A stretch of DNA of 64,000 bases from the NCBI GenBank assembly GCA_002269645.1, contig NIVC01000361.1, forward strand, positions 62,001 to 126,000, read 5' to 3'. Made by a program: the position numbers and the translations under genes. Origin of the DNA: Macrostomum lignano (lineage: Eukaryota). Numbering within the stretch: position 1 is the stretch's first letter; every line of letters starts with the position of its first letter. Under the pieces are notes generated by a model. The model saw only the letters and a list, made by a program, of their open reading frames with translations, was not told where the DNA came from and ran no database searches. Below are positions 3,299-64,000 of this stretch, piece by piece.

Positions 3299-3472
3299 TC
3301 AAACTGTCGATTCAAGCACTGAGACGGCGTCCCTGACGGCTCTGTACAGCAGTCTGCGGAGCGGCAGCCTATTGTGCTGGCGCATCTCCCGGCCCGTGGC
3401 CAGACACTGGCGGCAGCTCTCCTGGCTGACAAAATCCACTGACAGGCTGATGCCGCTGTGCAGGTTGCGCAC
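3299..3472 (-). CDS. KDM3: KDM3-like last coding exon (JmjC end + C-terminal helix)
   Basis: CAG acceptor 3474-3473; VRNLHSGISLSVDFVSQE...LLYRAVRDAVSVLESTV* parallels KDM3 VHNLYSCIKVAEDFVSPE...IIYHAVKDAV; TGA at 3301-3299. Confidence 0.9.
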   Translation of the reverse strand: MRNLHSGISLSVDFVSQESCRQCLATGREMRQHNRLPLRRLLYRAVRDAVSVLESTV

Positions 3473-3483
3473 CTGGGCAAATG

Positions 3484-4290
3484 TTGCAGAATGCAGATGC
3501 AGATTTCAGAACGTGGGGGATTCCTGATTGCAGTGTGGTGGATTCCCGATTGCAGAACGTGGGGGGGGATTCCCGATTACAGAATGTGGGGGTAGGGAAT
3601 TCCCGATTGCAGAATGTGGAGGGGGGAATTCCCGATTGCAGAATGTGGAGGGGAGGATTCCCGATTGCAGAATGTGGGGGATTCCCGATTGCAGAGTGTG
3701 GGGGGAATCCTGATTGCAGAATGTGGGGGGAATCCTGATTGCAGAATGTGGGGGGAATCCCGATTGCAGAGTGTGGGGGGGGGAATCCTGATTTCAGAAT
3801 GTGGTGGGGGGAATCCCGATTGCAGAGTGTGGGGGAATCCCGATTGCAGAATGTGGGGGGAATCCCGATTGCAGAATGTGGGGGGAATCCTGATTGTCGA
3901 ATGTGGGGGGGGGGGGTCCTGATTGCCGAATGTGGGGGGGGATCCTGATTGCAGAATGTGGGGGATTCCCGATTGCAGAATGTGGGAGGATTCCCGATTG
4001 CAGAATGTGGGAGGATTCCCGATTGCAGAATGTGGGAGGATTCCCGATTGCAGAATGTGGGAGGATTCCCGATTGCAGAATATGGGAGGATTCCTGATTG
4101 CAGAATGTGGGAGGATTCCCGATTGCAGAATGTGGGAGGATTCCTGATTGCAGAATGTGGGGGATTCCCGATTGCAGAATGTGGGGGATTCCCGATTGCA
4201 GAATGTGGGAGGATTCCCGATTGCAGAATGTGGGAGGATTCCCGATTTTAAGATGTGAGGGAATTTCCGATTGCAGAATGTGAGGGGGGA
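3484..4290. repeat. 24-25-bp minisatellite filling KDM3 last intron
   Basis: Unit GATTCCCGATTGCAGAATGTGGGAG. Confidence 0.95.
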
Positions 4291-4302
4291 TTTCGGCCCT
4301 AC

Positions 4303-5877
4303 CTGATAAGGCGCCCCGGCGGGCACGAAGACGGTGTCGCCCTGGAACTGCACAATCACGGCGGGGCGCAGGCCGCACTTGAGTCTGAGCCGGTCCAGCT
4401 CCGCAGGTCCCACGTAGGTGCCCGTCTGCTCCGCCAGCGGGTTGCCGCCGCCATTTTCGGCGCCGGCAGCCAGGAAGCGGCGCAGTTTGGCGGCGTCGGC
4501 AGGCCGGAAGACGTGCCAGAGGGCGCCGGGCAGACGGGAGTCCACGGCGATGGAGCGCAGGACGCCGGGGTCAACGCTGGCCCGCTCCAGTGCGGCGAAG
4601 GCGGCGGCCTTCTGCTGCTCCAGCGCGTCCTCCGGAGCGGCCACGTGGGCCAGCAGCACGGCCAGGTCGGCTGGCTGGCAGTGCAGCGCGAATGTGCCGG
4701 CAGTCTCGGTGCGCGACATGCCGTAGGCGCAGGTGAGCCGGGGAGGCGCGCAGCCGGCCGCCAGGTTGCAGCGGCCGCCGGCTCCGGTGTACTCGGCAAA
4801 CGGCACAGCCTTGGCGAGCTCGGACAGCGGCAGGCTGAACGGCTGGCCGGCGGGCGGGCGGAGCCGCAGCGAAAGCGGGTCGCCTGTGGCGGGGTTCTTC
4901 AGCCGGCGCTTCATGCTGTCGAAGCCGTCCCAGAAGTGGCGGGTGGGGCTGGCGGGCAGCTCGGTGCCGGCGTCGCAGTTCAGCACGCTGCATCGGCAGC
5001 CGGTCAGGCCGCGGCTCAGACTGCGCGGATGCCACCAGGCGTCGGCAGCAGCGGCGGCAGCGGCTGGCAGGCAGTTGGCCACCACAACTGGGAGGCCGCG
5101 GCGCCAGTGCCGCTGGAAGGCCAAGCAGCCGGGGCCGTCGGCCTGGCGCGGCGGCTCAGAGAAGCGCAGGATGAGGCTCCGGTTGTACGCGGCCTCCGCG
5201 TCTGGGTCTGCCGGGCTGTCGGCGGCTACTGGCGGCGGCGGCGGCGGCGGCGACTCCGGCGGGGAGAGCGGCGGCACGCGGAGGCTGGCAACGGCGGAGG
5301 CGAGGCGGGCGAAGGCGTCCCCAGGGACGTTGGTGGCCAGCAGCAGGCGGTCGGGCTCGTGCGCCTGCCGACCGACCGTGCAGTCGCCTGCGGCTGCCAC
5401 GCCGCCGCCTGGACGAAGCCGCGTCGCTGGCCGGTCGGAGGAGGAGGCGGCAGCGGCTGCTGCGGCGGCGGCTGGGTCGGAGAGGCGGCAGTCGGGCAGA
5501 GGGCGTAGCCGCACTTGCCGCAGCAGAAGTAGGCGCCGAACAGCGTTGAGTCGCACTGGTCGCAGGCTGTACCGCAGTTGCCCCGTCCGACGCCGCCGAC
5601 GTCTCGACGGCGCCAAAGCGACGCGGCGTTCGTGCCATCGCCCCCGGCTCCGCCGTAGCGGGCGCGCAGCTGGCGCTCCTGGCTGGCGAGTTCCTGGAAG
5701 GCTTCGCCGACAAAACTCAGCAGCCGTCGGGCCTCCGAGGCGACGACGCCAGGGGCGGCGGCTGCGGCGGCTCCGTTTGGCGGCTTGCGCAGCCAGGCGG
5801 CCAGGTCCTCGGGCTCGGCCTCGGTTGACTCGCAGAAGCCGCAGGCGGTCAAGCCGCCTTTCTTGTTGTAGCGCAGC
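4303..5877 (-). CDS. KDM3: KDM3-like coding exon 5 (zinc finger + most of JmjC); 1-nt frameshift at ~5494-5496
   Basis: CDQCDSTLFGAYFCCGKCGYALC/PDC zinc finger; FQRHWRRGLPVVV, FWDGF, GALWHVF, VQFQGDTVFVPAGAPYQ are KDM3 JmjC hallmarks; acceptor 5879-5878, donor 4302. Homology switches frame at TGC-CC-GAC. Confidence 0.92.
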
Positions 5878-5933: not shown

Positions 5934-6070
5934 CGGCGCCAAGCTGGGTACTAGTGGCGCCAAGCTGGGTACTAGTGGCGCCAAGCTAGGTACTAGTGGC
6001 GCCAAGCTGGGTACTAGTGGCGCCAAGCTGGGTACTAGTGGCGCCAAGCTGGGTACTAGTGGCGCCAAAC
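5934..6070. repeat. 21-bp minisatellite (GGCGCC core)
   Basis: Unit GGCGCCAAGCTGGGTACTAGT, ~6 copies. Confidence 0.95.
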
Positions 6071-6682: not shown

Positions 6683-6895
6683 TCACATTCCCCAGTGACA
6701 TCCGCCTCAACATTCCCCAGTGACATCCGAATGCACATTCCCCAGTGACATCCGACTGCACATTCCCCAGTGACATCCGACTGCACATTCCCGAGTGACA
6801 TTCGACTGCACATTCCCCAGTGACATCCGACTGCACATTCCCCAGTGACATCCGACTGCACATTCCCCAGTGACATCCGACTGCACATTCCCGAG
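6683..6895. repeat. 25-bp minisatellite
   Basis: Unit CACATTCCCCAGTGACATCCGACTG. Confidence 0.93.
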
Positions 6896-7384: not shown

Positions 7385-7850
7385 GTTACCCTCTCCCTCT
7401 CCTTCACCTTCTCTCCTTCACCTTCTCTCCCTCACATTCTCTCCCTCACCCTCTCTCCCTCACCCTCTCTCCCTCACCCTCTCTCCCTCACCTTCTCTCC
7501 CTCACCTTCTCTCCCTCACCCTCTCTCCCTCACCCTCTCTCCCTCACCCTCTCTCCCTCACCTTCTCTCCCTCACCTTCTCTCCCTCACCTTCTCTCCTT
7601 CACCTTCTCTCCTTCACCTTCTCTCCTTCACCTTCTCTCCCTCACCCTCTCTCCCTCACCCTCTCTTCCTCACCTTCTCTCCTTCACCTTCTCTCCCTCA
7701 CCCTCTCTCCCTCACCTTCTCTCCCTCACCTTCTCTCCTTCACCTTCTCTCCTTCACTTTCTCTCCCTCACATTCTCTCCCTCACCCTCTCTCCCTCACC
7801 TTCTCTTCCTCACATTCTCTCCCTCACCTTCTCTCCGACCCTCTCCCTTC
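7385..7850. repeat. CT-rich polypyrimidine repeat
   Basis: CTCTCCCTCACC(T/C) iterations. Confidence 0.93.
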
Positions 7851-8619
7851 ATTTCTCTACTAGTATCTGCAGTTTTCGCCTCTCCCTCCTGTCTCCTTAC
7901 CTGCCTCTCCCCAGTCTTTCTCTTTGAATTCCCAGTTCTCCCTTCTCTCCCCTTCGCCATTGTTTCTTTCCAGCTTTCTCAAACCCCCTTCCCTTGTAAG
8001 CAACAACAGCAACAGCCCGCAAAGTTTACGTGGCGTTCCCGGCCTCCCCCGCCCTTCGCCATTATCTTTACCTAGCTCACTATTTAACTACTCAAGAATT
8101 TTCTGCTCAGTCTTTCTCAGTTGAACACGAGGCTCCGATTGCAGCCGGTGCGCTCTGTATTATTTTACTGACTATAGTTAGCCAAGCCAGCTAGGCTTGT
8201 CAGACCGGCAACAGGCCGGGCGGAAATGCAGACCCGCGGCACCCGTCCACCTCCCCTCCCCGTCCGCAAGCCCGCCTGTTGTTTGTTGCACTGCTAGTTG
8301 CTAGCTAATTCTGGGCTTTTTCTCTGCTTTGCTTTGGGCATAGCCTGACATTCTGAAAATACAGTTTCTTTCATTTCTTTAAACACCATCCTACAGCAGG
8401 CTTGTCTACGGTGCAATATTCGGCTCAATTCATCAGGGTATGTGTCCGTGCAAGAGCAGAATTAGGGAAATGTGTGACATTTAATGATACCGACTCATAT
8501 CACTTTGACACTATAATACAACTATACCTCTGACTCCTCTACACTCCTCCACTCTGACAACTTTTGTCCTCACCCCGAAACCTATGATTACACACCCATA
8601 CAAGTACAAACAAATACAC

Positions 8620-9360
8620 CCAGACACCTCAAATCTCACACCTAGACACCTCAAATCTCACACCCAGACACCTCAAATCTCACACCCAGACACCTCAAAT
8701 CTCACACCCAGACATCCCAAATCTCGCACCTAGACACCTCAAATCTCACACCCAGACACCTCAAATCTCACACCTAGACACCTCAAATCTCGCACCCAGA
8801 CACCTCAAATCTCACACCTAGACACCTCAAATCTCACACCTAGACACCTCAAATCTCACACTCAGACACCTCAAATCTCACACCTAGACACCTCAAATCT
8901 CACACCTAGACACCTCAAATCTCACACCCAGACACCTCAAATCTCACACCCAGACACCTCAAATCTCACACCCAGACACCTCAAATCTCACACTGACACC
9001 TCAAATCTCACACCCAGACACCTCAAATCTCACACTTAGACACCTCAAGTCTCACACCTAGACACCTCAAATCTCACACCCAGACACCTCAAATCTCACA
9101 CCCAGACATCCTAAATCTCACACTCAGATACCTCAAATCGCACACCTAGACACCTCAAATCGCACACCTAGACACCTCAAATCTCACACTCAGACACCTC
9201 AAATCTCACACCTAGACACCTCAAATCTCACACCTAGACACCTCAAATCTCACACCCAGACACCTCAAATCTCACACCTAGACACGTCAAATTTCACACC
9301 CAGACACCTCAAATCTCACACCCAGACACCTCAAATCTCGCACCCAGACACCTCAAATCC
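8620..9360. repeat. 22-bp minisatellite
   Basis: Unit CACACCCAGACACCTCAAATCT. Confidence 0.95.
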
Positions 9361-9440
9361 ATCCCTGCCAGCCGCCCCCAATCCAGTCCCAGTCCCAAAA
9401 TGCCACCACACAGAGCCCGCAACTCAAAAAACTGTCTCAC

Positions 9441-9666
9441 TTTCTAAATCCAATGAACCGACAGGCTGTCCCGTCAGCGCTGGCCACGACAGCAGCGGTC
9501 GACTTGGCCATGGCGGCGGCGTGCTGCCCGGCTGGCCGGCACTCGCGACACTTCGCCAGCTTGGCGCAGGCGAGCTGAGAGCACGGCGAGTCCTGAACGA
9601 ACTGCTCAAGGCTGCGCTCGTAGTGCTCGCGACCGTGCTTGTTGAGAGGCCGGGCTAGTGCGCCCA
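9441..9666 (-). CDS. KDM3: KDM3-like coding exon 4
   Basis: FVQDSPC..KLAKCRECR..ACRFIGFRK matches the KDM3 motif FLQDGSC..HKCRECR..CRFFHFRR; AG acceptor 9668-9667, GTGAG donor 9440. Confidence 0.88.
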
Positions 9667-9696
9667 CTGCCGATGGGAAAGCAGAGTAGGTGGCAC

Positions 9697-10095
9697 TGCT
9701 AGATGCTGAGTGACTGACTGCTAGATGCTGAGTGACTGACTGCTAGATGCTGACTGACTGACTGCTAGATGCTGAGTGACTGACTGCTAGATGCTGAGTG
9801 ACTGACTGCTAGATGCTGAGTGACTGACTGCTAGATGCTGACTGACTGACTGCTAGATGCTGAGTGACTGACTGCTAGATGCTGAGTGACTGACTGCTAG
9901 ATGCTGAGTGACTGACTGCTAGATGCTGAGTGACTGACTGCTAGATGCTGAGTGACTGATTGCTAGATGCTGATTGACTGACTGCTAGATGCTGAGTGAC
10001 TGACTGCTAGATGCTGACTGACTGACTGCTAGATGCTGAGTGACTGACTGCTAGATGCTGAGTGACTGACTGCTAGATGCTGAGTGACTGACTGC
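9697..10095. repeat. 22-bp minisatellite next to exon 4 acceptor
   Basis: Unit TGCTAGATGCTGAGTGACTGAC. Confidence 0.95.
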
Positions 10096-10671
10096 TGGAA
10101 GCCATGAAAGCTGCCCTTGAGGGGATAATTTTAGAAAACAAGGCATCATCATATTTTGTTAGCTAGTCGAGCAAAATACTCAGGTTGCTGAGCACTCGCC
10201 CTCCCCTGTTTCCCATCGCACACAAGCAAGCATAATTTGGCTAAACACAGACGAGAGCGCAGGAACTATTAAGGCTGTTTGGCCTTATTTTTGTTTGAGT
10301 AATTTTTTTTGCTGAGCAGCTGCCCGCAGGCAAGGGCACTTTGCTAATTAAATAGCAAGGTTTCAACACGCGCAAACGCAGACACGCACACACTGGCCCT
10401 AAAAATTGCTGGTTCAGAGAAAGAGAGAGAGAGCAGGTGTCTCAAAAATGACAGGTGCGGGCCGTTAGCAATCAGACAGAGAATGCAAAGCTAAGTGAAA
10501 GCAAGCTAGAAAATTGCCACGAAAAGCATAGGCATTAAACACAGACCATGATTACAGAGGCCTCGGAATGCTTTAATTACTAGCCTTCCCCTCGCCTGTT
10601 GATATTCCGGTGTACTTTTCTGCTCAGCGCTCTATAATCCTCTGGCCCCGAAACTCAAGCACAGCACTGCG

Positions 10672-11604
10672 CAAGGTCGGCAAATTCCGGCTCTCAGGTG
10701 CTTTGAAACTTCACAATAGCAATCCGGACCGCTCAAGGTTTGTGTCTCTTCTCACCTCTCTTTTCTAATAATCTCCTCTCCTGTTTTCTCTCCTATCCTC
10801 TCTCTCCTTTCATCTCTCCTCTCCTCTCTCCTCTCCTCTCCTCTCTCCTCTCTCCTCTCTCCTCTCCTCTCTCATCTCTCCTGTCCTCTCACCTCTCTCA
10901 TCTCTCCTCTCCTCTCTCATCTCCTCTCTTTCATCTCTCCTCTCCTCTCTCATCTCTCCTGTGCTCTCTCCTATCCTCTCTCATCTCTCATCTCTCCTCT
11001 CCTCTCTCCTCTCTCCCTCTCTCATCTCTCCTCTCTCATCTCCTCTCTCATCTCCTCTCTTTCATCTCTTCTCTCCTCTCTCATCTCTCCTGTGCTCTCT
11101 CCTATCCTCTCTCATCTCTCCTCTCCTCTCTCCTCTCTCCCTCTCTCATCTCTCCTCTCTCATCTCTCCTGTCCTCTCACCTCTCTCATCTCTCCACTAC
11201 TCTCTCATCACCTCTCTTTCATCTCTCCTCTCCTCTCTCATCTCTCCTCTCCTCTCTCTCATCTCTCCACTCTCTCATCTCTCCTCTCTCCTCTCTCCTC
11301 TCTCCTCTCTCCTCTCTCCTCTCCTCTCTCCCTCTCTCATCACCTCTCTCCCTCTCTCATCTCTCCTCTCTCCTCTCTCATCTCTCCTCTCCTCTCTCCT
11401 CTCTCATCTCTCCTCTCTCCTCTCTCCTCTCTCCTCTCTCATCTCTCCTCTCCAATCTCTTCTCTCTGTTCTCCAATCTCCGCTCTTCCGTCGCTTCTCC
11501 TTTCTCCTATCTCTATTCTCTATTTTCCCAGACACTCTCCTCTCTCCCCTCCTCTAGTAGGCATGCGCTAGGTTCTCTAGGTTCACTCTGCGCTAGGTCG
11601 CCTG
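10672..11604. mobile_element. hAT-like MITE with expanded CT-rich interior
   Basis: Left end CAAGGTCGGCAAA, degenerate 8-bp TSD GCACTGCG/GCATAGCG; ~50-bp block (TTTGAAACT..TAGCAATCCGG.CCGCTCAAGGTTTGTGTCTCTT) shared with 42640-42695. Confidence 0.5.
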
Positions 11605-13774: not shown

Positions 13775-15030
13775 TATCTACTCTACATCCGATTCCCATC
13801 TATCTACAACAGATTCCCATGTATCTAAATCTGATTCTCATGTACGAGTATCTACATCCGATTCCCATGTATCTACATCTGATTCCCATCTATCTACATC
13901 TGATTCCCAGTCTATCTACATCCGATTCCCAGTCTATCTACATCTGATTCCCATCTATCTACATCCGATTCCCAGTCTATCTACATCTGATTCCCATCTA
14001 TCTACATCTGATTCCCATCTATCTACATCCGATTCCCGTCTATCTACATCTGATTCCCATCTATCTACATCCGATTCCCGTCTATCTACATCTGATTCCC
14101 ATCTATCTACATCTGATTCCCATCTATCTAAATCTGATTCCCATCTATCTACATCAGATTCCCATCTATCTACATCAGATTCCCATCCCATGTATCTAAA
14201 TCTGATTCTCATGTATCTAAATCTGATTCCTATCTATCTACATCAGATTCCCATGTATCTAAATTAGATTCTCATGTATCTACATCTGATTCCCATCTAT
14301 CTACATCAGATTCTCATGTATCTAAATCTGATTCTCATGTATCTACATCCGATTCCCATGTATCTACATCTGATTCCCATCTATCTACATCTGATTCCCA
14401 TCTATCTACATCTGATTCCCGTCTATCTACATCTGATTCCCATCTATCTACATCTGATTCCCATCTATCTACATCTGATTCCCATCTATCTACATCAGAT
14501 TCCCATCTATCTACATCAGATTCCCATCCCATGTATCTAAATCTGATTCTCATGTATCTACATCCGATTCCCATCTATCTACATCAGATTCCCATGTATC
14601 TAAATCTGATTCTCATGTATCTACATCTGATTCCTATCTATCTACATCAGATTCCCATGTATCTAAATCTGATTCTCATGTATCTACATCTGATTCCTAT
14701 CTATCTACATCAGATTCCCATGTATCTAAATCTGATTCTCATGTATCTACATCTGATTCCCATCTATCTACATCAGATTCCCATGTATCTAAATCTGATT
14801 CTCATGTATCTACATCTGATTCCCATCTATCTACATCAGATTCCCATGTATCTAAATCTGATTCTCATGTATCTACATCTGATTCCCATCTATCTACATC
14901 AGATTCTCATGTATCTAAATCTGATTCTCATGTATCTACATCCGATTCCCATGTATCTACATCTGATTCCCATCTATCTACATCCAATTCCCTTCTATCT
15001 ACAATCTACACAAGATTCCCATCTATTGAT
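13775..15030. repeat. 21-bp minisatellite
   Basis: Unit TCTACATCTGATTCCCATCTA and variants. Confidence 0.95.
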
Positions 15031-17600: not shown

Positions 17601-18260
17601 ATATAGGGATTTATATTGATAAGTCAGATGGCTGGGTTACAATAGAACTGAGTGCAATAGTCCCAGGAAATTGTAAATACAAACTTCACTCAAATTGATC
17701 GCATGGAAGTGTGATGAGCACCTAAGCGAAATAATAATCACTAAGGAAACTGACTAAACTTGTGCACCAGAAGCTCTGCACCTGGGACGCATATACAAAG
17801 GATCTTCCCTTACCCTGAACAGTTTCAGGCATTGACTCAATAGTTGTTTCTGAGCATAGCAGAGCAATTATGCGTGCTATTTGTGCTTAGAATAACTGCC
17901 TCAAGAACTGATTGTGTGCGTTTATTTTCAATTTTTTTCTCACAAAATACCGTTTGGCGCCTTGGGGAATGGAAGCGAAAATCTTTTTACTTTATCTGTT
18001 TTGTTTAATCACCAGCTCAATTATCGCATCTGGCTTGGCTCTCTGTCTATAGCCTGTGATTAAAGGAAACTGCTCGAAAATACGGGAGATAAACCAATTA
18101 CAGGGAAGCAGCTGGTGCACTGACAAAAGAATGTGCGGCTGGAATAATCATCTGTTCAATTAGTCTCGTGCAGCTGTGCTGTAAAACTGCAACAATATTG
18201 CTTTTTAAAAACCACGGTTTCTGAGGATCCTTGTGGGACTAAAAGTAGCTGGTGAACATT

Positions 18261-19160
18261 AGGGGTAGCTGTGGGGACAGGAGGGGTAGCTGTGGGGACA
18301 GGAGGGGTAGCTGTGGGGACAGGAGGGGTAGCTGTGGGGACAGGAGGGGTAGCTGTGGGGACAGGAGGGGTAGCTGTGGGGACAGGAGGGGTAGCTGTGG
18401 GGACAGGAGGGGTAGCTGTGGGGACAGGAGGGGTAGCTGTGGGGACAGGAGGGGTAGCTGTGGGGACAGGAGGGGTAGCTGTGGGGACAGGAGGGGTAGC
18501 TGTGGGGACAGGAGGGGTAGCTGTGGGGACAGGAGGGGTAGCTGTGGGGACAAGAGGGGTAGCTGTGGGGACAGGAGGGGTAGCTGTGGGGACAGGAGGG
18601 GTAGCTGTGGGGACAGGAGGGGTAGCTGTGGGGACACGAGGGGTAGCTGTGGGGACAGGAGGGGTAGCTGTGGGACAGGAGGGGTAGCTGTGGGGACAGG
18701 AGGGGTAGCTGTGGGGACAGGAGGGGTAGCTGTGGGGACAGGAGGGGTAGCTGTGGGGACACGAGGGGTAGCTGTGGGGACAGGAGGGGTAGCTGTGGGG
18801 ACAGGAGGGGTAGCTGTGGGGACAGGAGGGGTAGCTGTGGGGACAGGAGGGGTAGCTGTGGGGACAGGAGGGGTAGCTGTGGGGACAAGAGGGGTAGCTG
18901 TGGGGACAGGAGGGGTAGCTGTGGGGACAGGAGGGGTAGCTGTGGGGACAAGAGGGGTAGCTGTGGGGACAGGAGGGGTAGCTGTGGGGACAGGAGGGGT
19001 AGCTGTGGGGACAGGATGGGTAGCTGGGTGGACAGGAGGGGTAGCAGTGGAAAGGAGGGGTAGCTCGGTGGACAGGAGGGGTAGCTGTGAGGACAAGAGG
19101 GGTAGCTGGTGGACAGGAGGGGTAGCTGTGAGGACAAGAGGGGTAGCTGGTGGACAGTGC
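18261..19160. repeat. 21-bp G-rich minisatellite abutting exon 2 donor
   Basis: Unit GGGGTAGCTGTGGGGACAGGA. Confidence 0.96.
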
Positions 19161-19178
19161 AATAGGCAGTAAACTCAC

Positions 19179-19188
19179 CCCTTTCATC

Positions 19189-19227
<39 letters not shown>

Positions 19228-19459
19228 TCCTGCTGCATCCGTCTGAGCCAAGCCTTCTTCAGTCCCACAGCCGGAGTAGCAGCAACGCAACCCGCAGTGG
19301 CGGGAGCGGACGGCGGCGGACTGCCAGACGGTCCGGGCGTCCCAGCGCTGGCGATTGACCCAGTCGGAGAAGATGTCGAATTGCTAGGTGTAGAACTCTG
19401 CTGAGTTTTCTGCTGGAGCTGTGGCTGCGGCTGGGGCTGGGGCGGCTGCTGTTGCTGCT

Positions 19460-19493
<34 letters not shown>

Positions 19494-20385
19494 CTGTTGC
19501 TGTTGCTGTTGCTCCTGTTTTTGCTTCTGCTGCTGCTGCAACTGCTGTTGCTGCAGCTGCTGCTGTTGCTGCAGCTGCTGCTGTTTCTGATGCTGATGCT
19601 GCTGTTGTTGTGGAGGCGGTGGCGGTAGCGGCGGTGGCGGCGGCGGTGGTGGCGGCTGTTGAATGACAGGCGGTTGCCGAGGCAGCGGCGGAGTGGCTCC
19701 AGCAGCGGGCAAAGAGTTCGGCGTTGCTGGATTAATCGGCCGAGCTTCCTGCGTGAAGGAGGCCGCTCTGCTGCGCGACCGTTGCTGATGGTGATACGAT
19801 AAAGGCGGGAGCGGCAGCGGCGGCAGTGGCGGAGGCAGCGGCTGGTGCTGCTGATGCTGACTACTGCGAGGCATGGGAACGTGTGGGGCTTGCGGCTGCG
19901 GGATCAGGTGACGGCGCAATGGAGCGGCTGCGGCGGCTGCAGCGGCGGCAGCGGAATTGATCCCGCCAATCGATGACATTTGCTGCTGTTGTTGCTGGGG
20001 CTGGGGCTGCTGCTGCTGCTGTTGCTGGCGTTGAAGCTGTTGATGAGCCTGATAGTGCAGCAGGCTGTGCTGGTGCTGCCTGTTCATCTTGTCGATGCTG
20101 AGCTGGAAATGCTGCTCAACTAAGTCGCTGGTTTGATCAGCCACCGCCGCCGCCGCTGCCGCTGCTGACGTTGCTGGCGTCAATGGCGGCGGGGGAGGCG
20201 GCGGGGGAGGCGGCTGCTGCTGTGTCGGTACAGGCAGTGGCACTTGGCCAGATGCTGTGGCGGCGGCTGCGGCTGCGGCAGCGGCGGCGACTGCTGCGGA
20301 GGGTCCACTGTTGCTGCTGCCGCGTGGCGGCGTCTTGCGGCTGCTGCTGCTGCTGCGAGGCTTCGCATCATCGTGCCTGTACATC
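19179..20385 (-). CDS. KDM3: KDM3-like coding exon 2 (poly-Q/P/A low-complexity)
   Basis: CAG acceptor 20387-20386, GTGAGT donor 19178; phases match both neighbouring exons. Confidence 0.78.
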
Positions 20386-22412
20386 CTGGTGAATTGAGGA
20401 TGTGGGCAATTCTTATTCAAACATAAGAAGTTAGAATTAGCCATGACAACCCAAAACTGTCTTGGTCATGTCACAGAAGTATACCATACTATGGATATGG
20501 ACAGATAATAGCTATTGGTAATAAGTGAAGCGAATTGGGGATACTAATCGCTTCCGTTTCTCGGGGATTTATCACCCTTCTCTCTGTGGTTTTATATTTG
20601 ATTCGTTATTTTAGTCTCAGTGTCGTAAAACTACTCGCATATATTAGCGCCTCCCAGTTGTGGAAATAGATCGTAGTCTAAAAAAGCAGACAAGCGAAGC
20701 CATAATGCTGTTGAAGTGAAATCGGGCTCTCGGACAGAAGACGGTGATAAATCATTAGACGGACGGGAGGAAAGGAAGTGGACAGCTTGGAGCGGTCAAG
20801 GCGTCTTGTCCAGATCCAACCCATGTAATGTCACTGCGCAGATGACAAATTTGCGATAATGTTTTGAATATTCGTTATCTTTCATTTCGTATTCATAGTA
20901 ATAGTAAAGCGGTAGGAAATGGTTAGTTAGCATTTGTCCTTCATTGCTATTTAAGAGTGCGCGCGCGAGCAGCAAAACAAATTTTAAACAGAATATATAA
21001 AGTTCCTAACAAACCAACCCTCAACCGGCGCTGTCAAAAGGCCCAACTGAAGACCTGCCGACCGACAAAAATCGCTAATAGAACAAAGACCAACTGGAGT
21101 AAGGCTCAGACTGCTGGCGCCACAACAATCTAAGCCTCTTTATTTTTACGATCTACTAGCGTATATATGATAAATTCTTCTTATATGATAGTATGCAGTA
21201 AAATATTGAGAAGATACGCATCAGTTCAATTCATAGCAGATGTGAAGGCAGGCGGGCTTGATAATAATTAATAATATATATTTACAAACTCTGCACACAG
21301 TGCGCCACGGTTGAACCCCCCAAGGGTACAAGCAATAAAACTTTAGACCCCACCAAGGCATGACATTGGTGTTTTTAACTATTTAGTAAGTTGTGCGTCA
21401 AAGCGGAAAGCACGAGAGACGAGAGGCACACGAGGCCTGCGAGGGAGAGAGAGAGAAGGGGCAATCTAAAGGCCTGGCGGCACAAGGAAGGTCGGAATGC
21501 AATGTATGTGCAATGTTCAACCGTGTACACACAAGTCCGCTCACTTGAGTTTATCTTAACCTATTATTATACGGACTAGATAATATATTCGTTCAACTTT
21601 TATTAAATCGTCAATCAAATTTAAACTTAAAAGGTTGCAACAAATTCCAGCGTTTTGAGAGCTAGTTTAGATAAAAGGAGGGGGGAGCTGGGAGAGGAAT
21701 CTAGAGCAGCGATGCACTTAAAGTTCAAGCGTGCGCGTTAGCTTAAGAAATTGAAAAACACCGCCGGGCGCCGCTTATGTTATACACGAGCTATTATTAG
21801 TGTAGCTTAAATAATTGGATTTGATAAGCTCTTTCCCACCATTGGCTTGACTTGCGGGCCCATTCAACTTATTACTTAGATAAGCGAACAGCCCCAGATT
21901 CACTAGCCTCACTCCCGCCTGTAAATTTCACCAAGCCGAAGATTTTTTAATAGATTAGCCTATTCTGCGCAGTTCTCGCTGGCAAAAATTAAACTTTGAC
22001 CTTTCCCCAAGTGCAGTTTAGCCTATTATTTAGCCTATACCCCAGGGCCCAAGGCAGGCAAGAGTATTCTAATTATCAGAAGCTATAAAATATTTCATTA
22101 AATTGAAGTCACCTTTATGGCTTTATTTGTTTGTTGATAAACGCAGTCGCACGTTCATTATGAAATAAATAATTAATTAACTCCATGTGTACGTTCGATT
22201 GGATGGAAATTTTACTAAAAAACAGCATACGTGCAAGTACACGTAAACACATAATATGCGGACATTATTGGAGGAGTGGAGGACCAAAAACCTTAAAAGG
22301 ACAAAGTGTTGGTTAAAAGGCTGGCTGAGTCTAGCCTAGGATAGAAGTATTCCCTCATTCAAGGTAAATGTTCAGGCCTCAGAGCAGAGCAGTATAAAAA
22401 AGTCGCACTCAC

Positions 22413-23113
22413 CGTTCCATTTGGCTCTGATTTCTGCACAATTCATCCTGATACTGCAGCAGCATCCAGAAGGGCGGCGGAGGCACATCCGGATGCATGT
22501 GCTCCCACATTGATTTCAAATTGCTGTAGTGCGGCTCTTTGGCCGCCGCTGCTGCCGCCGCTGCCGCCGCCTGCGGAAATGCGGCAGCCTGCTGCATTAC
22601 CTGGCACATCTGAGCATGCGCCTGCATTCGCTGGTACTCTTGCTGCAGTCTTTGTTGATGCATCTGTTGTTGCTGCTGTTGAGCCTGTTGTTGCTGTTGT
22701 TGTTGCTGTTGTTGAAGTGCCAGTAGATGCGCGTGGTGCTGTTGATATAACAGCATCTGCTCAGCGTCCGCTTTGCTCATTGACGCCAATGACCCTCCTG
22801 AAGTTGTCGCTGGATACTTCGGAATGGCGTGACCATTTCCGCCGTATATTGAACTTATTAAATAGTTTTTCTCACTAGATGGTAGACTCTGCTGTTGCCG
22901 CTGATGATGATGGCTGCTGCGGCTGTGCTGATGCTGTTGTTGCTGCTGGTGCTGCTGCAACTGCTGCTGCTGATACTGCTGATGATGCTGAGCTAGTTGA
23001 GCAGCAGCTGCAGCGGCCGCCGCAGCTGCAGCAGCCTGGCTATGATTCTGCTGCTGTGCCATCAGCGAGGCTTGCGAAGCACCACTGCTGCTGCTCATTA
23101 GCTTCTTGTGCAT
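22413..23113 (-). CDS. KDM3: KDM3/JMJD1-like protein, coding exon 1 (poly-Q/A/H low-complexity)
   Basis: Pyrimidine tract+AG acceptor at 23127-23126, ATG at 23113, GTGAGT donor at 22412; phase 2 joins exon 2 as QME-R-MYR. The frame is open upstream of the ATG (KAPE), so a further upstream coding exon is possible. Confidence 0.75.
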
Positions 23114-46971: not shown

Positions 46972-47593
46972 TCACAGGCCCGTGTACCGAGTTCTAGGCC
47001 GCGATTCCATAACGCAGGCAATCTCACGCTGATAGACCAGAAACGCTCTAGTCGCAAAGTCGAGCGGCAGGTACTGGTACACAGAGTGCACGTAATTCAC
47101 TTCGGTCGCTAATAGCGCTCTCCGGACCGCATTACGGCAAGCAAAACGCAACGACTGCGGCGAGTTAATTGCTACTGAACAGCGGGATGAATTAATAGTG
47201 CGGCGCAGTTCATTAACGGCCGACTCCGCGGCAGCCAGTTGCGATTGGCTGGCGCCCCGGCCAATTAGAGCCGCTTGAACACCCGAGTAGTTGTACACGC
47301 CAAGAAGTGCACTAAAAAATGCTTCCGGGCGCATCAGCGAATCCAGCAGGAATGGACTCTCGGCTACATATCGATTGACTATTGGCTCGCGCTCGTGTTC
47401 GTCTGGGAACAGAGCCCGGGTGGGCCGCAGCGGCGGCTCGATGTGCTCCTCGGCCCATACTGTGGTCTCCTTCACCAGACTGGTGTAGCTGACTAGGCAG
47501 CGGCAGGCCACGGCCGGATCGGTGTGGCCCACCGGCTGCATAAGGCCAACAAGCAGGTGCATTGTGAACGATACGTAGCTGTCCATCGCGCGT
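46972..47593 (-). CDS. ASB-like protein exon 2 with C-terminal SOCS box
   Basis: GCAG acceptor 47595-47594 restores the frame (RE-RAMDS); SPQSLRFACRNAVRRAL...YLPLDFATRAFLVY is a SOCS-box pattern (~47032-47163). Confidence 0.78.
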
Positions 47594-47950: not shown

Positions 47951-48233
47951 ATTACTTTCGGTGACTTTTTTATCACTCTCTTGTTTTGTGCTCACTCCCC
48001 TTTGTGTCTGGTCACTACCACTGGTTTCTGACGGTCACTCCCTTTGATTTCTGGTCTCCCGAGTAGCTTTCTGATTAAACCTGGTGCATTCTCAATATTC
48101 TTATCACTCTCCATGATCCTCACCCTGGAGTAGTTACTACCCACTAACGTCTATAGCAAATCGATGATTGTCACGCTCAATGATAGACTCCCCTCTGATA
48201 AAACGAATCAACATCGCTCTAGAAGTCACTCAC

Positions 48234-48628
48234 TCTCGCGTCATGCTGTCAATGAAAGCGCGCAACACATCGCGCCAAAGAATTGGAGCCCGTCTGGCCA
48301 ACTCAAGCATAGCCCTGGGCGCCCTGGCACTAACGGAACAGTCTAACGGGCTCTGGCCAAGGTTTCTAACTGTAGGATTGGCGCCCAGCTCAATCAAAGC
48401 GCGCACGGAGCCAGCCCGGTCCGATCTGGCGGCCAGGTGCAAGGCGGTTAGCGCAGACTGACTAGTGATCTCATCATTAACACCCAGCCGGCCGCTAGTA
48501 ACTAGATCGCGCATAGCATCGGCGTCCTCGTCTAGGACTGCCGTCTCCATTCGCCGTTTCGGATTGCTGTCCGAATTGGCAGACAAAAACTGCAGTAGAA
48601 CGCTGCCGCCGCCAGGCTGATTGGCCAT
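48234..48628 (-). CDS. Ankyrin-repeat/SOCS-box (ASB-like) protein exon 1: ankyrin repeats
   Basis: TALHLAARSDRAGSVRALIELGANPTVRN-GQSPLD is an ankyrin consensus; GTGAGT donor 48233, phase 2. Confidence 0.8.
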
Positions 48629-51243: not shown

Positions 51244-51594
51244 TTACATCATGCCGCCCATACCACCCATGCCTCCCATACCTCCGCCCATACCGCCGGC
51301 GCCCATCTCCTTCTCCGGCTTAGGAATCTCGGTGACAACAGCCTCGGCTGTAGTCAGCAGCGAAGCCACACCGGCGGCGTCAACCAGGGCGGTGCGGACA
51401 ACCTTAGTGGGGTCGATGATGCCCTTCTCGATCATGTTCACGTACTGGCCGTTGAGAGCGTCGTAGCCCATATCACCGCCGAGTTCGGTGACCTTCTCAA
51501 CAACTAGATCGCCATTAATGCCGGCGTTGCTAGCGATAGTGTGGCAGGGGATGCGCAGAGCGCGGCGGACAATCTCAATGCCCACTGTCTGGTC
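51244..51594 (-). CDS. HSPD1: HSP60 coding exon 4
   Basis: [14 protein letters not shown]-terminal GGM repeats, TAA at 51246-51244; total CDS 1737 nt = 578 aa. Confidence 0.96.
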
Positions 51595-51894
51595 CTGTGG
51601 GAACGATGATGAATGCACTGAGTAAGTAGCAGTCAAGCAATTGAGAAAATCAACAGACATGGATAAGAGGGGCTACCCCCCCCCCTGACCACATACTAAG
51701 TACACTAGCCAGTGTACTCAACCCATGGATGAATAAAACCATATTTAGCAAAACTATAACTACTCTCTGTTCGGTAGTAAGAGCGTAAAAGCAACATTAG
51801 ATTATTCAAATGGAATTACTAGCTCCACTAGTGTATTTTGATCCACTACCAGACTTGGCCATAGATAAAAGAATTGAAAGCAGCAGTTGGCAGC

Positions 51895-52592: not shown

Positions 52593-52677
52593 TTGGCAGC
52601 GTGTGACAAGGAGTTCAAGGAGTTCTATAATTAGCATCTGGAGTGGAAGGACACTTAAAACACTTAACCAATCATAC

Positions 52678-53085
52678 CGGATTGACAGGCTTCAGCGTGT
52701 CCAGAGACGGCCTGCAGCGGAGCAGAGCAACGCCGCCGCCAGGCACGATGCCCTCCTCAACGGCTGCCCGAGTAGCGTTCAGAGCGTCCGTGTAGCGATC
52801 GCGCTTCTCGCTGACCTCAACCTCCGAGGAGCCGCCGACGCGGATGACGGCGACGCCGTTGCTGAGCTTGGCCAGACGCTCCTGCAGCTTCTCCTTCTCG
52901 TAGTCGCTGCTGGTGTCTTCAATCTCGTCCTTGATCTGGTTGACTCGCTTGTCAATGCTGGCCCGCTCGCCTTTGCCCTTCATCAGCAGGGTGTCGTCCT
53001 TGGTGACGATGGCCTCGCCGACCCTGCCGAAATCGCTAGCCTGGATGTCCTCCAGCTTGTACATGTCGGCTTCGTCGCCGAAGAC
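52678..53085 (-). CDS. HSPD1: HSP60 coding exon 3
   Basis: [40 protein letters not shown]; acceptor 53087-53086, donor 52677. Confidence 0.96.
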
Positions 53086-53179
53086 CTGCGGTGTCAAATT
53101 AGGGCAAAATCGGTTCATCTCAACAGTCTCTGAGTTTTTATATTGTTAAAGCTTAAAATCTGTATGGTTTTGCTGTGTA

Positions 53180-54990: not shown

Positions 54991-55070
54991 GTTTCACATG
55001 CGTTAATGTGGGGAAGTACTATTACTTTTGAGTTCGCTGGCCAAATAGAAAAATGGAAATTAATCAGCTA

Positions 55071-55799
<729 letters not shown>

Positions 55800-60805: not shown

Positions 60806-62388
60806 CCCCATAGTAAGGATCATGACATGGGTACGCTAGAATAAAAAGATAGCCAATGAAACCCAGTGGAACCCAGTGATACGCCAACGGACCAGAGGGG
60901 GGGGGGGTAGAGATAGCAGTGCACGTAAAGGATTAGAAATTGAAATCAAAATAGAAATTTGCTATTTTCCAAAATCAAAATTGAAATTTTCCAAAATCAA
61001 AATTCAGAAAAACAAATTTTAGTACAATTAACACTTGTTTTCATTTGTGTTGAAATTTCAATGACTTTAACGAAAGAAAATTAATACCAGGATAAACTTT
61101 TTTTCTTCTTTTTCAATTTTAAAAAACAGTTTTTTAAAAATAAACTTTTTGCATCAGGATTCAAGATATTGTAGATAGGCAAGGCCCCATGCCCATGGTG
61201 GCATGACATTAATTGTGTATCGTGGCACACCATTGCATGCCATGGGGTACTTTCTCTAAACCATGGTAAGCCATATATGCTGAAATTGGCCCAAAATTTC
61301 TGTGTATGCCAGAATTTTCCAAGTAAAATGCCATCTTCTTGACTATGGCCCTCTAGATAGTTCCCCCTATTGCAACCTAATTTTCACTTTGTATATGACT
61401 TTTTTTGCCTTTTCTCTTTTCTCCTTCCTTCTTTTTTTTCTTTTTCTTTACCTTTTATTCTTTCTTCCAATTTTTTGTTTTTTTCATTTTTTTGTTACTT
61501 ATCTTGGCTGGTGGCCATTTTACCTATCTAGCCACATTGTGGAAAGTGTAATATATGCCAGAAAATTCTGGCATACAAACACTTTAGCTTGTATACATCT
61601 AGTATACAAATGCTTTAGCTAATGTACATATGGCATACAAGGAGGAAATAAAACTTTTTGGCACAATAATTAGCTTACAATTTATATCTATATATGTTCA
61701 AGCTTGTGTTGCAGTAAACAAAAGTGTTAAAGTATGTATCATAATTGTGTAAATTACATTAAACAATCCTTTACTATAATAAAATTTATTTTAATTTTTT
61801 TAAATAGGCCTAATATCTTAGATAATAATAATAACAATAATATCTAGACTATTATATTATATTATATATCTATTAATATCTTAATAATAATAACATATTA
61901 ATAGATGGTATATATAATAAGTTTACAGTTACTAGTGAAAAATATAAGCCCTACCTAAAACAATAATAATATATCAATAATTTTACTTTGGCTTCTGATT
62001 TAATGAGGTTTAACCTTGCAAAAATAGGCAAAACAGGGCCTAAAATTTTTTTATTTACTTTTTGATTAGACCTTTGGGTGACATTTAGGTTATGTCAAAA
62101 TAGTCAATTTATTAGATGTTGGAAAGTGGGGTCAGAAAAATTAGATCTTAGCTACAGCAAAATAGACTGCTACAATTGAGGCCTAATAATAACTAGGCCT
62201 AAAAAAGCTAAAAAATTAGTGGAGTAGGTCAGATCAGACTAGAACGGTATAAGTAGTTTTTGATTCGCAAAATTTACCTTTCAAGTTCTAGAATTCGGAC
62301 CGCTTCTCGGCCAAAAATCTTTGGCTAGAGGAATTGACAAATCAATATTAGACAAATTCTGGATAATGAAATTAAGTTTCGCAGCGCA

Positions 62389-63351: not shown

Positions 63352-64000
63352 CTATTCGGCCAAGGCCGCCGGGCTCGGACGGCACCGGCGGGGTGGCCGT
63401 TGGCGGCTGGGGAAAGCAGCAGTGCGTTGGGCCGCCGGCGGAATGTCGCCAGCTGAAGAGGCGGGGTCGGCGGCAGAGTGCGCTGGGGGCGGCTCAGCGG
63501 GCAGCCGCGGCGGGCGGCCTCTTGGTCGCAGGGCCGGCGTCGGGAATGGGTCGACCGCGTCGATGACGGCTGGCTTCAGTCTGTCCACTGACACTCGGTC
63601 GCGTCGAGTGCCCAGATCCAGCAGGAAAGCTTTGGCGTCCCGCTCGAGGACCTTGAACGGGCCGTCGTAAGGTCGCTGCAGCGGAGGGCGGTGGCCGTCG
63701 CGCCGGACGAAAACGAACTGGCAGGAGTCGAGGGCGGCCGGCCAAGCTGTGGGGCGGCTGCCGTGACGGGACGTCGGCGTCGGCCGGAATGCCTGGACGG
63801 CGCTGCGGAGCCAGGCGAGGAACTGGTCGTGGTCGCCGGCCGGCGGGCTGGGCTGCAGGCACTCGCCAGGCACGCAGAGGGGCGCTCCGTAGACCAGCTC
63901 GGCCGACGATGCCGGCAGGTCCTCCTTGGGGGCCGTCTGGATGCCGAGCAGCACCCAGGGTAGCTCGCTGACCCAGGCTGGTCCGGCCAGTCGCGTCATG
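63352..64000 (-). mobile_element. Gypsy/Ty3 pol C-terminus (integrase, GPY/F region), truncated by window edge
   Basis: W...LPWVLLGIQTAPKEDL..SSAELVYG..L.VPGE, VFVRRD...PLQRPYDGPFKVL, VSVDRLKP; stop at 63352 followed by a polypurine tract. Confidence 0.92.

Follow-up and report, generated by a model that had tools for sequence, protein, structure and literature searches.

Among the described systems closest to the gene treated here, KDM3A and KDM3B (JMJD1A/B, JHDM2A/B) are active H3K9me1/2 demethylases which combine a Cys-rich motif, a C2HC4-type zinc finger and a C-terminal JmjC domain. KDM3A, the activity of which depends on its zinc finger, is reportedly a working homodimer. Single exchanges of iron ligands already abolish activity in these enzymes, as described for KDM3A H1120Y and KDM3B H1560A/D1562A (PMC13149330) as well as for the inactive variants KDM3A H1120A and KDM3B H1560A (PMC3623819). 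JMJD1C keeps a full His-Glu-His triad with Gln at the position of a conserved Lys, and its activity is disputed. Hairless (HR, 'KDM3D') is a further member of the KDM3 family with degenerate cofactor residues and has been described as a scaffold or corepressor (PMC3623819), while reports on the activity of mammalian Hairless conflict (PMC7280979 vs PMC3623819). Variant cofactor residues also occur in plant KDM3 proteins (AtKDM3A/B of Zhou and Ma 2008; JMJ24-type), which are expressed nonetheless and for which new function versus pseudogene was discussed as early as 2008 (PMC2579438). Here, a KDM3/JHDM2-type JmjC gene of the flatworm Macrostomum lignano, Mlig018660.g3 (BOX15_Mlig018660g3), is compared with these systems. 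It lies on the minus strand of contig NIVC01000361.1 of assembly Mlig_3_7 (GCA_002269645.1), within the 64,000-nucleotide stretch (the window; contig positions 62,001 to 126,000) to which all coordinates below refer.

The gene is best explained as a member of the KDM3/JHDM2 family that is specific to its lineage and evolves very fast. Its active site differs from that of KDM3A and KDM3B at the following positions:

4675-4698, minus strand: degenerate HxD motif GTFALHCQ, with the first His kept (CAC, 4683-4681) and the acidic ligand replaced by Gln (CAG, 4677-4675)
4692-4690 and 4689-4687, minus strand: GTTN residues, with Thr three positions before the first His (His-3) replaced by Phe and Asn at His-2 replaced by Ala
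4306-4308, minus strand: distal Fe-binding His replaced by Tyr (TAT) in PAGAPYQV, with PAGAPYQ at 4323-4303
3448-3446, minus strand: Lys of CIKVAEDF replaced by Ser (AGC) in GISLSVDF, which starts at 3454 in the last exon

That Mlig018660.g3 belongs to the KDM3/JHDM2 (JMJD1) family, as proposed in an initial annotation of this DNA, is borne out by phmmer, by a family alignment and by Foldseek, and the homology is far beyond chance. In a phmmer search against all PDB sequences, only JMJD1C and KDM3B were matched (E 1.7e-36 to 1.4e-33), the best matches being JMJD1C 2ypd (E=1.7e-36) and KDM3B 6rbj (E=2e-35). Among 1.84 billion representatives searched exhaustively with HMMER, 95 proteins reached E<=1e-30, and those clusters for which names were looked up are all of KDM3, JMJD1C or Hairless type, or unnamed. 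Nearest relatives are the trematode KDM3 proteins of Fasciola and Clonorchis, with 40% identity in the domain.

The same annotation had derived a triad H-Q-Y and an exchange of Lys for Ser from the motifs GTFALHCQPAD (4698-4666), PAGAPYQV and GISLSVDF. All three are found on the minus strand where it had placed them, and the replaced residues fall into the same columns in the alignment to PDB matches and in the family alignment. In the former, HCQ is aligned with HLD/HIE, PYQV with PHQV and GISLSV with CIKVAE; the KDM3B equivalents read GTTNLHLD, PAGAPHQV and CIKVAEDF. The family alignment comprises the 150 best domains, with the residue counted for each functional column. The first His is present in 131 of these 150 sequences and is retained in Mlig018660.g3, while the acidic ligand (Asp or Glu in 140/150) is Gln. 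At the distal position, His is found in 116 and Tyr in 14 of the 150 members, Mlig018660.g3 carrying Tyr; at the CIKV position, 95 of 131 non-gap rows have Lys and 11 have Ser, as does Mlig018660.g3. The Thr at His-3 (114/150) and the Asn at His-2 (123/150) are Phe and Ala, respectively. Thus, instead of the facial triad His-x-Asp/Glu ... His, Mlig018660.g3 reads His-Cys-Gln ... Tyr, and the conserved residues around the 2-oxoglutarate (2OG) site, that is, Thr and Asn of GTTN and Lys of CIKV, are Phe, Ala and Ser. The roles of these three residues in 2OG binding are presumed by analogy with other JmjC enzymes. The same substitutions are present in the second homeolog, g2 (PAA57837.1), and in the models A0A1I8F4Y9 and A0A1I8IPA5 of the older ML2 assembly; therefore, they are not sequencing errors of a single locus. 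With two of the three Fe ligands, the Lys and two GTTN residues replaced, the initial proposal of a probably inactive demethylase holds, and since single iron-ligand changes are already sufficient to abolish the activity of KDM3A and KDM3B, Fe(II)/2OG-dependent demethylase activity has very probably been lost. Two of the replacements, Tyr for the distal His and Ser for the Lys, recur in several lineages of the family, namely in Hairless, a lamprey protein, unnamed metagenomic proteins and Mlig018660.g3. The exchange of the distal His for Tyr requires a single C-to-T change only, and at the Lys position JMJD1C-type sequences have Gln.

The loss of catalytic ligands is confirmed by these comparisons, but it is not confined to the ligands, and the degeneration extends across the entire domain. 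Of 114 columns conserved in at least 80% of the family, Mlig018660.g3 keeps 68 (60%), compared with a family median of 95%; only Hairless-like sequences are comparably low, with 61-68% kept. In the family alignment, KLKDWP is changed to RLRP-P and DPIHDQ to NPLAEQ, and two loops, FVRPDLGP and LSxTHxNH, are deleted, the latter gap being located in the last exon. In a neighbour-joining tree of 123 domains, the terminal branch of Mlig018660.g3 is the longest (0.79). In its architecture, Mlig018660.g3 appears to retain the family scheme, which runs from a Cys-rich motif at the N-terminus through a C2HC4-type finger to a JmjC double-stranded beta-helix at the C-terminus. An AlphaFold2 model of the JmjC domain based on a 28-sequence alignment reached a predicted local distance difference test score (pLDDT) of 86.2 and a predicted template modelling score (pTM) of 0.87. 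In Foldseek, the predicted fold matched KDM3B (5r7x/6rbj) and JMJD1C with template modelling (TM) scores of 0.79-0.83 and root mean square deviations of 2.6-3.0 Å, the next family after KDM3 being JMJD6 at a TM score of about 0.5. A KDM3B-like JmjC fold is therefore predicted to be retained in Mlig018660.g3.

The gene itself extends well beyond the annotated protein and is composed of the following elements:

9441-9666, minus strand: upstream coding exon with the Cys-rich KDM3 N-terminal motif ...CSQLACAKLAKCRECR...ACRFIGFRK; GT donor at 9440-9439, 5' boundary tentative
4303-5877, minus strand: large coding exon of 1,575 nucleotides and about 73% GC, which encodes most of the JmjC domain and, ahead of it, the C2HC4-type finger and an Ala/Pro-rich linker
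5488-5564, minus strand: zinc finger CDQCDSTLFGAYFCCGKCGYALC(P)DC, with the His ligand replaced by Tyr (TAC, 5531-5529)
5494-5495, minus strand: frame break, where the Pro codon of C-P-D-C is one base short (TGC CC/GAC TGC), so that finger and JmjC domain lie in different frames
4303-5130, minus strand: the part of the JmjC domain in the large exon, GCLAFQRHW ... PAGAPYQ, which gives the phmmer matches to the JMJD1C and KDM3B structures
3473-4302, minus strand: GT-AG intron of 830 nucleotides, almost all of it a 25-nucleotide minisatellite (3502-4288, about 31 copies), with the 3' end ...TTGCCCAG
3299-3472, minus strand: last coding exon, VRNLHSGISLSVDFVSQESC...VLESTV, with the stop codon TGA at 3301-3299
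630-2507, 3502-4288, 5935-6068, 6684-6892, 7397-7836, 8616-9359, 9695-10096 and 10745-11473: minisatellite and microsatellite arrays

For this locus, the source annotation, which is transcriptome-based, provides a gene model, and its NCBI protein, PAA84810.1, has 261 amino acids. The genomic sequence retrieved via this protein is 100% identical to window positions 14914 to 1. The model starts at an internal Met at 4914 (4914-3299, minus strand) and lacks the exon at 9666-9441, the zinc finger and the beginning of the JmjC domain. Because the large exon also encodes the zinc finger and is preceded by the upstream exon, PAA84810.1 is a truncated annotation, and at least three coding exons make up the actual gene. 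The upstream exon, which is identical to the start of the ML2 model A0A1I8IPA5, encodes CAKLAKCRECR...ACRFIGFRKL and fits the family consensus CxECx13CRFxxFRxL of the N-terminal motif; in homeolog g2, 258 of 258 bases are identical. It is joined to the large exon at RK/LRYNKKGG (here and below, a slash marks the junction) by a GTGAGA donor and a CCGCAG acceptor, the AG of which lies at 5879-5878. The large exon ends at the GT donor 4302-4301 (CAG/GTAGGG), and across the resulting junction PAGAPYQ/VRNLHSG the spliced translation is 100% identical to PAA84810.1. A retrocopy can be rejected on account of the two GT-AG introns.

Macrostomum lignano has been described as a recent hidden polyploid. 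At least two copies of the gene exist in Mlig_3_7: the homeolog g2 on NIVC01002441.1 is near-identical to g3, with a minisatellite intron about 214 nucleotides longer than that of g3. Three older models of the Mlig018660 gene come from the ML2 assembly, namely A0A1I8IPA5, A0A1I8F8Z2 and A0A1I8F4Y9, the latter two being mosaics of reading frames. In the literature search, Mlig018660 was named in no paper, and none linked Macrostomum to KDM3. The introns and the intergenic DNA around the gene are densely filled with mini- and microsatellite arrays with periods of 4 to 120 nucleotides, and these arrays give rise to many spurious long open reading frames (ORFs) on both strands.

The initial annotation had further held that the zinc finger is kept together with the JmjC fold. 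This stands for the predicted fold and for the seven Cys of the finger, which are all present with the proper spacing (CDQC-x7-Y-x2-C-x2-C-x4-C-x2-C), but neither for the finger His, which is Tyr, nor for the reading frame, which is broken inside the finger. In the family pattern C-x2-C-x7-[H]-x2-C-x2-C-x4-C-x2-C, the His is present in 135 of 138 fingers; Tyr occurs only in the Macrostomum lignano models and in one chytrid protein. The last C-x2-C lies beyond the frame break: Cys at 5498-5496 is followed by only CC (5495-5494) before GAC TGC CGC, and the upstream (finger) frame, when read straight on, meets a stop at 5226. With the frame intact, the finger sequence would be TGCCCNGACTGC, compared with TGCCCGACTGC in the frame-break version. 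The three ML2 models A0A1I8IPA5, A0A1I8F8Z2 and A0A1I8F4Y9 do not contain the break and read through as CPDCRLSDP (CGYALCPDCRLSDP).

As for the origin of the break, an intron bridging it was considered and rejected, as the second half of the conserved C-x2-C follows at once, but in the other frame (CGYALC/(P)DCR), and only a one-base indel fits. Programmed -1 frameshifting was likewise rejected, since on inspection no slippery heptamer is found at CTC TGC CCG ACT. Mlig_3_7 is a Canu assembly of the same PacBio data as the earlier assembly, polished by Pilon with Illumina and RNA-seq reads. Because both assemblies derive from one PacBio data set, the difference between Mlig_3_7 and ML2 at this site is a matter of consensus calling. 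The loss of a base from a C/G run within duplicated sequence of 73% GC is typical of the errors that persist in long-read consensus, and GC-rich duplicated places of this kind are poorly polished by short reads that map to several loci. Conversely, it is unlikely that an insertion error restored a deeply conserved motif at three separate ML2 loci. On this basis, the frame break is probably an assembly artefact rather than a real frameshift.

Like KDM3A and KDM3B, Mlig018660.g3 has a Cys-rich motif, a finger with the spacing and the seven Cys of the C2HC4 type and a C-terminal JmjC domain. Replaced in it are the Asp and the distal His among the Fe ligands, the Lys of CIKV, two residues of GTTN (Thr and Asn) and the His of the finger. 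A parallel in residue pattern is found in Hairless, of which representatives from turtle, sparrow, caecilian and coelacanth read GTKNLTVE / P(Y/H)QV / TISV. Like Mlig018660.g3, the turtle, caecilian and coelacanth proteins carry Tyr in place of the distal His, which is still present in the sparrow protein; the Lys is Ser in turtle, coelacanth and sparrow, again as in Mlig018660.g3, with Gly in the caecilian; and the retention of conserved columns is similarly low (61-68% vs 60%). In contrast, the first His is replaced by Thr in Hairless, in which the Asp/Glu is usually retained, whereas Mlig018660.g3 keeps the first His and has Gln at the acidic position. Identity to Mlig018660.g3 is only 28-33% for Hairless compared with 40% for trematode KDM3. 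Hence, the earlier statement that the substitutions differ from those of Hairless applies to the first His and the acidic ligand, but not to Tyr and Ser, which several Hairless proteins share. A grouping with Hairless in the neighbour-joining tree, which could be taken as orthology, was rejected as long-branch attraction: the internal branch measures 0.009, and both the residue pattern and the identity disagree with it. An independent loss, as suggested by the initial annotation, is not a matter the tree can settle. Nevertheless, because the sequence is nearer to trematode KDM3 than to Hairless and Hairless is a vertebrate gene, a loss independent of vertebrate Hairless is likely, but not proven. 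Among other JmjC proteins, the plant KDM3 proteins differ by a RING-type N-terminal region and would represent independent events, and JARID2, the textbook JmjC protein without cofactor ligands, to which a scaffold role is ascribed, belongs to another JmjC subfamily.

The reading to which we lean, by a modest preponderance of the evidence, is that of a catalytically dead KDM3-family protein which, if translated in full, would act in a non-catalytic manner. The exchange of the Fe(II) acid ligand for Gln, of the distal His for Tyr, of the Lys for Ser and of Thr and Asn of GTTN for Phe and Ala, together with the deletion of two loops and the exchange of the finger His for Tyr, would amount to a loss of the chemistry, such that neither productive binding of Fe(II) and 2OG nor, consequently, H3K9 demethylation would be expected. 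If functional, such a protein would most plausibly serve as a scaffold in chromatin or transcription, similar to the role ascribed to Hairless and JARID2, or alternatively as a dead dimer partner of an active KDM3; these two modes are considered because Hairless and JARID2 have been described as scaffolds and KDM3A has been reported as a homodimer. The coding sequence shows several properties of a maintained gene. The JmjC frame contains no stop in 397 codons, the other two frames having 7 and 2, while only 34 of 5000 composition-matched shuffles are free of stops. GC content by codon position is 0.73/0.60/0.86 in this frame, a strong periodicity, and the two introns are canonical. The gene model of the transcriptome-based annotation and the predicted KDM3B-like fold also count in favour of a maintained gene. 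Between g3 and g2, 4 of 2009 exon bases differ, compared with 25 of 1756 in unique non-coding sequence of the intron and the downstream region (odds ratio 0.14, Fisher p=1.5e-5), the exons being about 7 times less diverged between the homeologs than the flanking DNA.

Several points weigh against a maintained non-catalytic protein. The coding changes between g3 and g2 are 2 non-synonymous and 2 synonymous ones, and with only 4 exon differences the ratio of non-synonymous to synonymous substitution rates between the homeologs is uninformative. GC-biased gene conversion between homeologs could be an alternative cause of the low divergence of exons with 73% GC. The retention of 68 of 114 conserved columns and the longest branch are also expected from relaxed constraint. 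An AlphaFold run on a 10-sequence alignment reached a pLDDT of 54 only and was set aside for the conclusions, and AlphaFold, when guided by aligned sequences of active relatives, is in any case inclined to yield the fold of the family. Word-index protein searches, which were swamped by Ala/Pro-rich words, gave neither an orthologue from another Macrostomum species nor a canonical KDM3 of Macrostomum lignano, but only the gene's own models plus one trematode KDM3 protein and one weak ENA match; likewise, the 30 cluster representatives that were named include no Macrostomum sequence except the Mlig018660 gene. Finally, the frame break is identical in homeolog g2 (locus L002, at about 9419-9432) and hence present in both Mlig_3_7 copies, and if it is real, no full-length protein is made and only the modelled 261-amino-acid C-terminal ORF is left.

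From these points, a decaying gene or young pseudogene emerges as the strongest alternative, though the less likely of the two in our estimation. It would imply a genuine one-base deletion in the finger, older than the recent genome duplication, and relaxed constraint behind the ligand losses and the divergence of the whole domain, while transcription and splicing persist. Consistent with this are the occurrence of the break in both copies despite Pilon polishing with Illumina and RNA-seq reads, the retention of just 60% of the conserved columns on the longest branch of the family, the loss of metal ligands in both the finger and the JmjC domain, and the fact that annotators could call a 261-amino-acid ORF only. 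On the other hand, CPDCR is uninterrupted in the three ML2 models, which go back to the same PacBio reads, and a missing base in such GC-rich duplicated sequence is a classic error of long-read consensus. Moreover, about 580 further codons are free of stops, the splice sites are intact and the exons are about 7 times more conserved between the copies than their flanks.

Far less probable than either is that Mlig018660.g3 still acts as a metal-dependent oxygenase with an unusual His/Gln/Tyr site, possibly on another substrate or after activation. One ligand, the first His, is retained, and an intact fold is predicted; PHF2, with Tyr in place of the distal His, reportedly still binds metal in crystals. 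In vitro, PHF2 becomes active only upon phosphorylation by protein kinase A (PMC9898751), and H3K9 demethylase activity has been reported for Hairless (PMC7280979). However, the replacements in Mlig018660.g3 affect the acidic ligand and the distal His as well as the Lys and, within GTTN, Thr and Asn at the same time, and two loops are missing, whereas one ligand mutation suffices to kill KDM3A or KDM3B; in addition, the finger needed for activity is without its His. The notion that the substitutions are assembly or annotation errors in a normal KDM3 gene is already refuted, since, even though Macrostomum lignano assemblies do carry indel errors (the frame mosaics A0A1I8F8Z2 and A0A1I8F4Y9 and the frame break in the finger), indels cannot produce in-frame base substitutions across a whole domain, and these are identical in two Mlig_3_7 loci and in independent ML2 models, which leaves the finger frame break as the sole remaining candidate artefact.

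Elsewhere in the window, further ORFs and exons were noted, all on the minus strand. Upstream of the KDM3-like gene and on the same strand, long Gln/Pro/Ala-rich ORFs of 762 and 234 amino acids are located at 18156-20444 and 22409-23113. Between 37452 and 43593, GC-rich (58-65%) ORFs of 235-334 amino acids, rich in Ala, Leu and Arg and separated by minisatellites, look like exons of one large gene. The ORFs at 46972-47586 and 48230-48628 resemble, by eye, ankyrin-repeat/SOCS-box (ASB-like) proteins; for the former, no PDB sequence was matched at E<=0.001. Exons of mitochondrial HSP60 (chaperonin 60) are present at 55068-55790, 52672-53118 and 51244-51660, the first of which matches human HSP60 structures at E=7e-110. 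At 63352-63999, a GC-rich ORF looks by eye like the C-terminal end of an integrase or polyprotein from a retroelement, and it, too, had no PDB sequence match at E<=0.001.

Dead JmjC proteins are already known in the form of JARID2, Hairless and some plant KDM3 proteins, to which Mlig018660.g3 adds a new and probably independent case; as such proteins are textbook knowledge, no long-standing question is opened by it. In a more specific and still tentative interpretation, which we would not favour on present evidence but would not discount either, the gene represents a flatworm "Hairless-like" dead KDM3 paralogue with convergent Tyr and Ser and a lost finger His, which is under selection in both homeologs and arose independently of vertebrates. 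If this were true, the conversion of a KDM3 enzyme into a non-catalytic scaffold would be a recurrent, structurally favoured route, or the protein would serve as a dead dimer partner regulating active KDM3. Since transgenesis and RNA interference are available in Macrostomum lignano, the function of the gene is testable. The recurrent replacements by Tyr (14/150) and Ser (11/150) may also be useful for predicting the activity of JmjC proteins from sequence. Should Mlig018660.g3 prove functional, it would represent an invertebrate enzyme-to-scaffold conversion among KDM3 proteins, which apparently took place independently of that in vertebrates.

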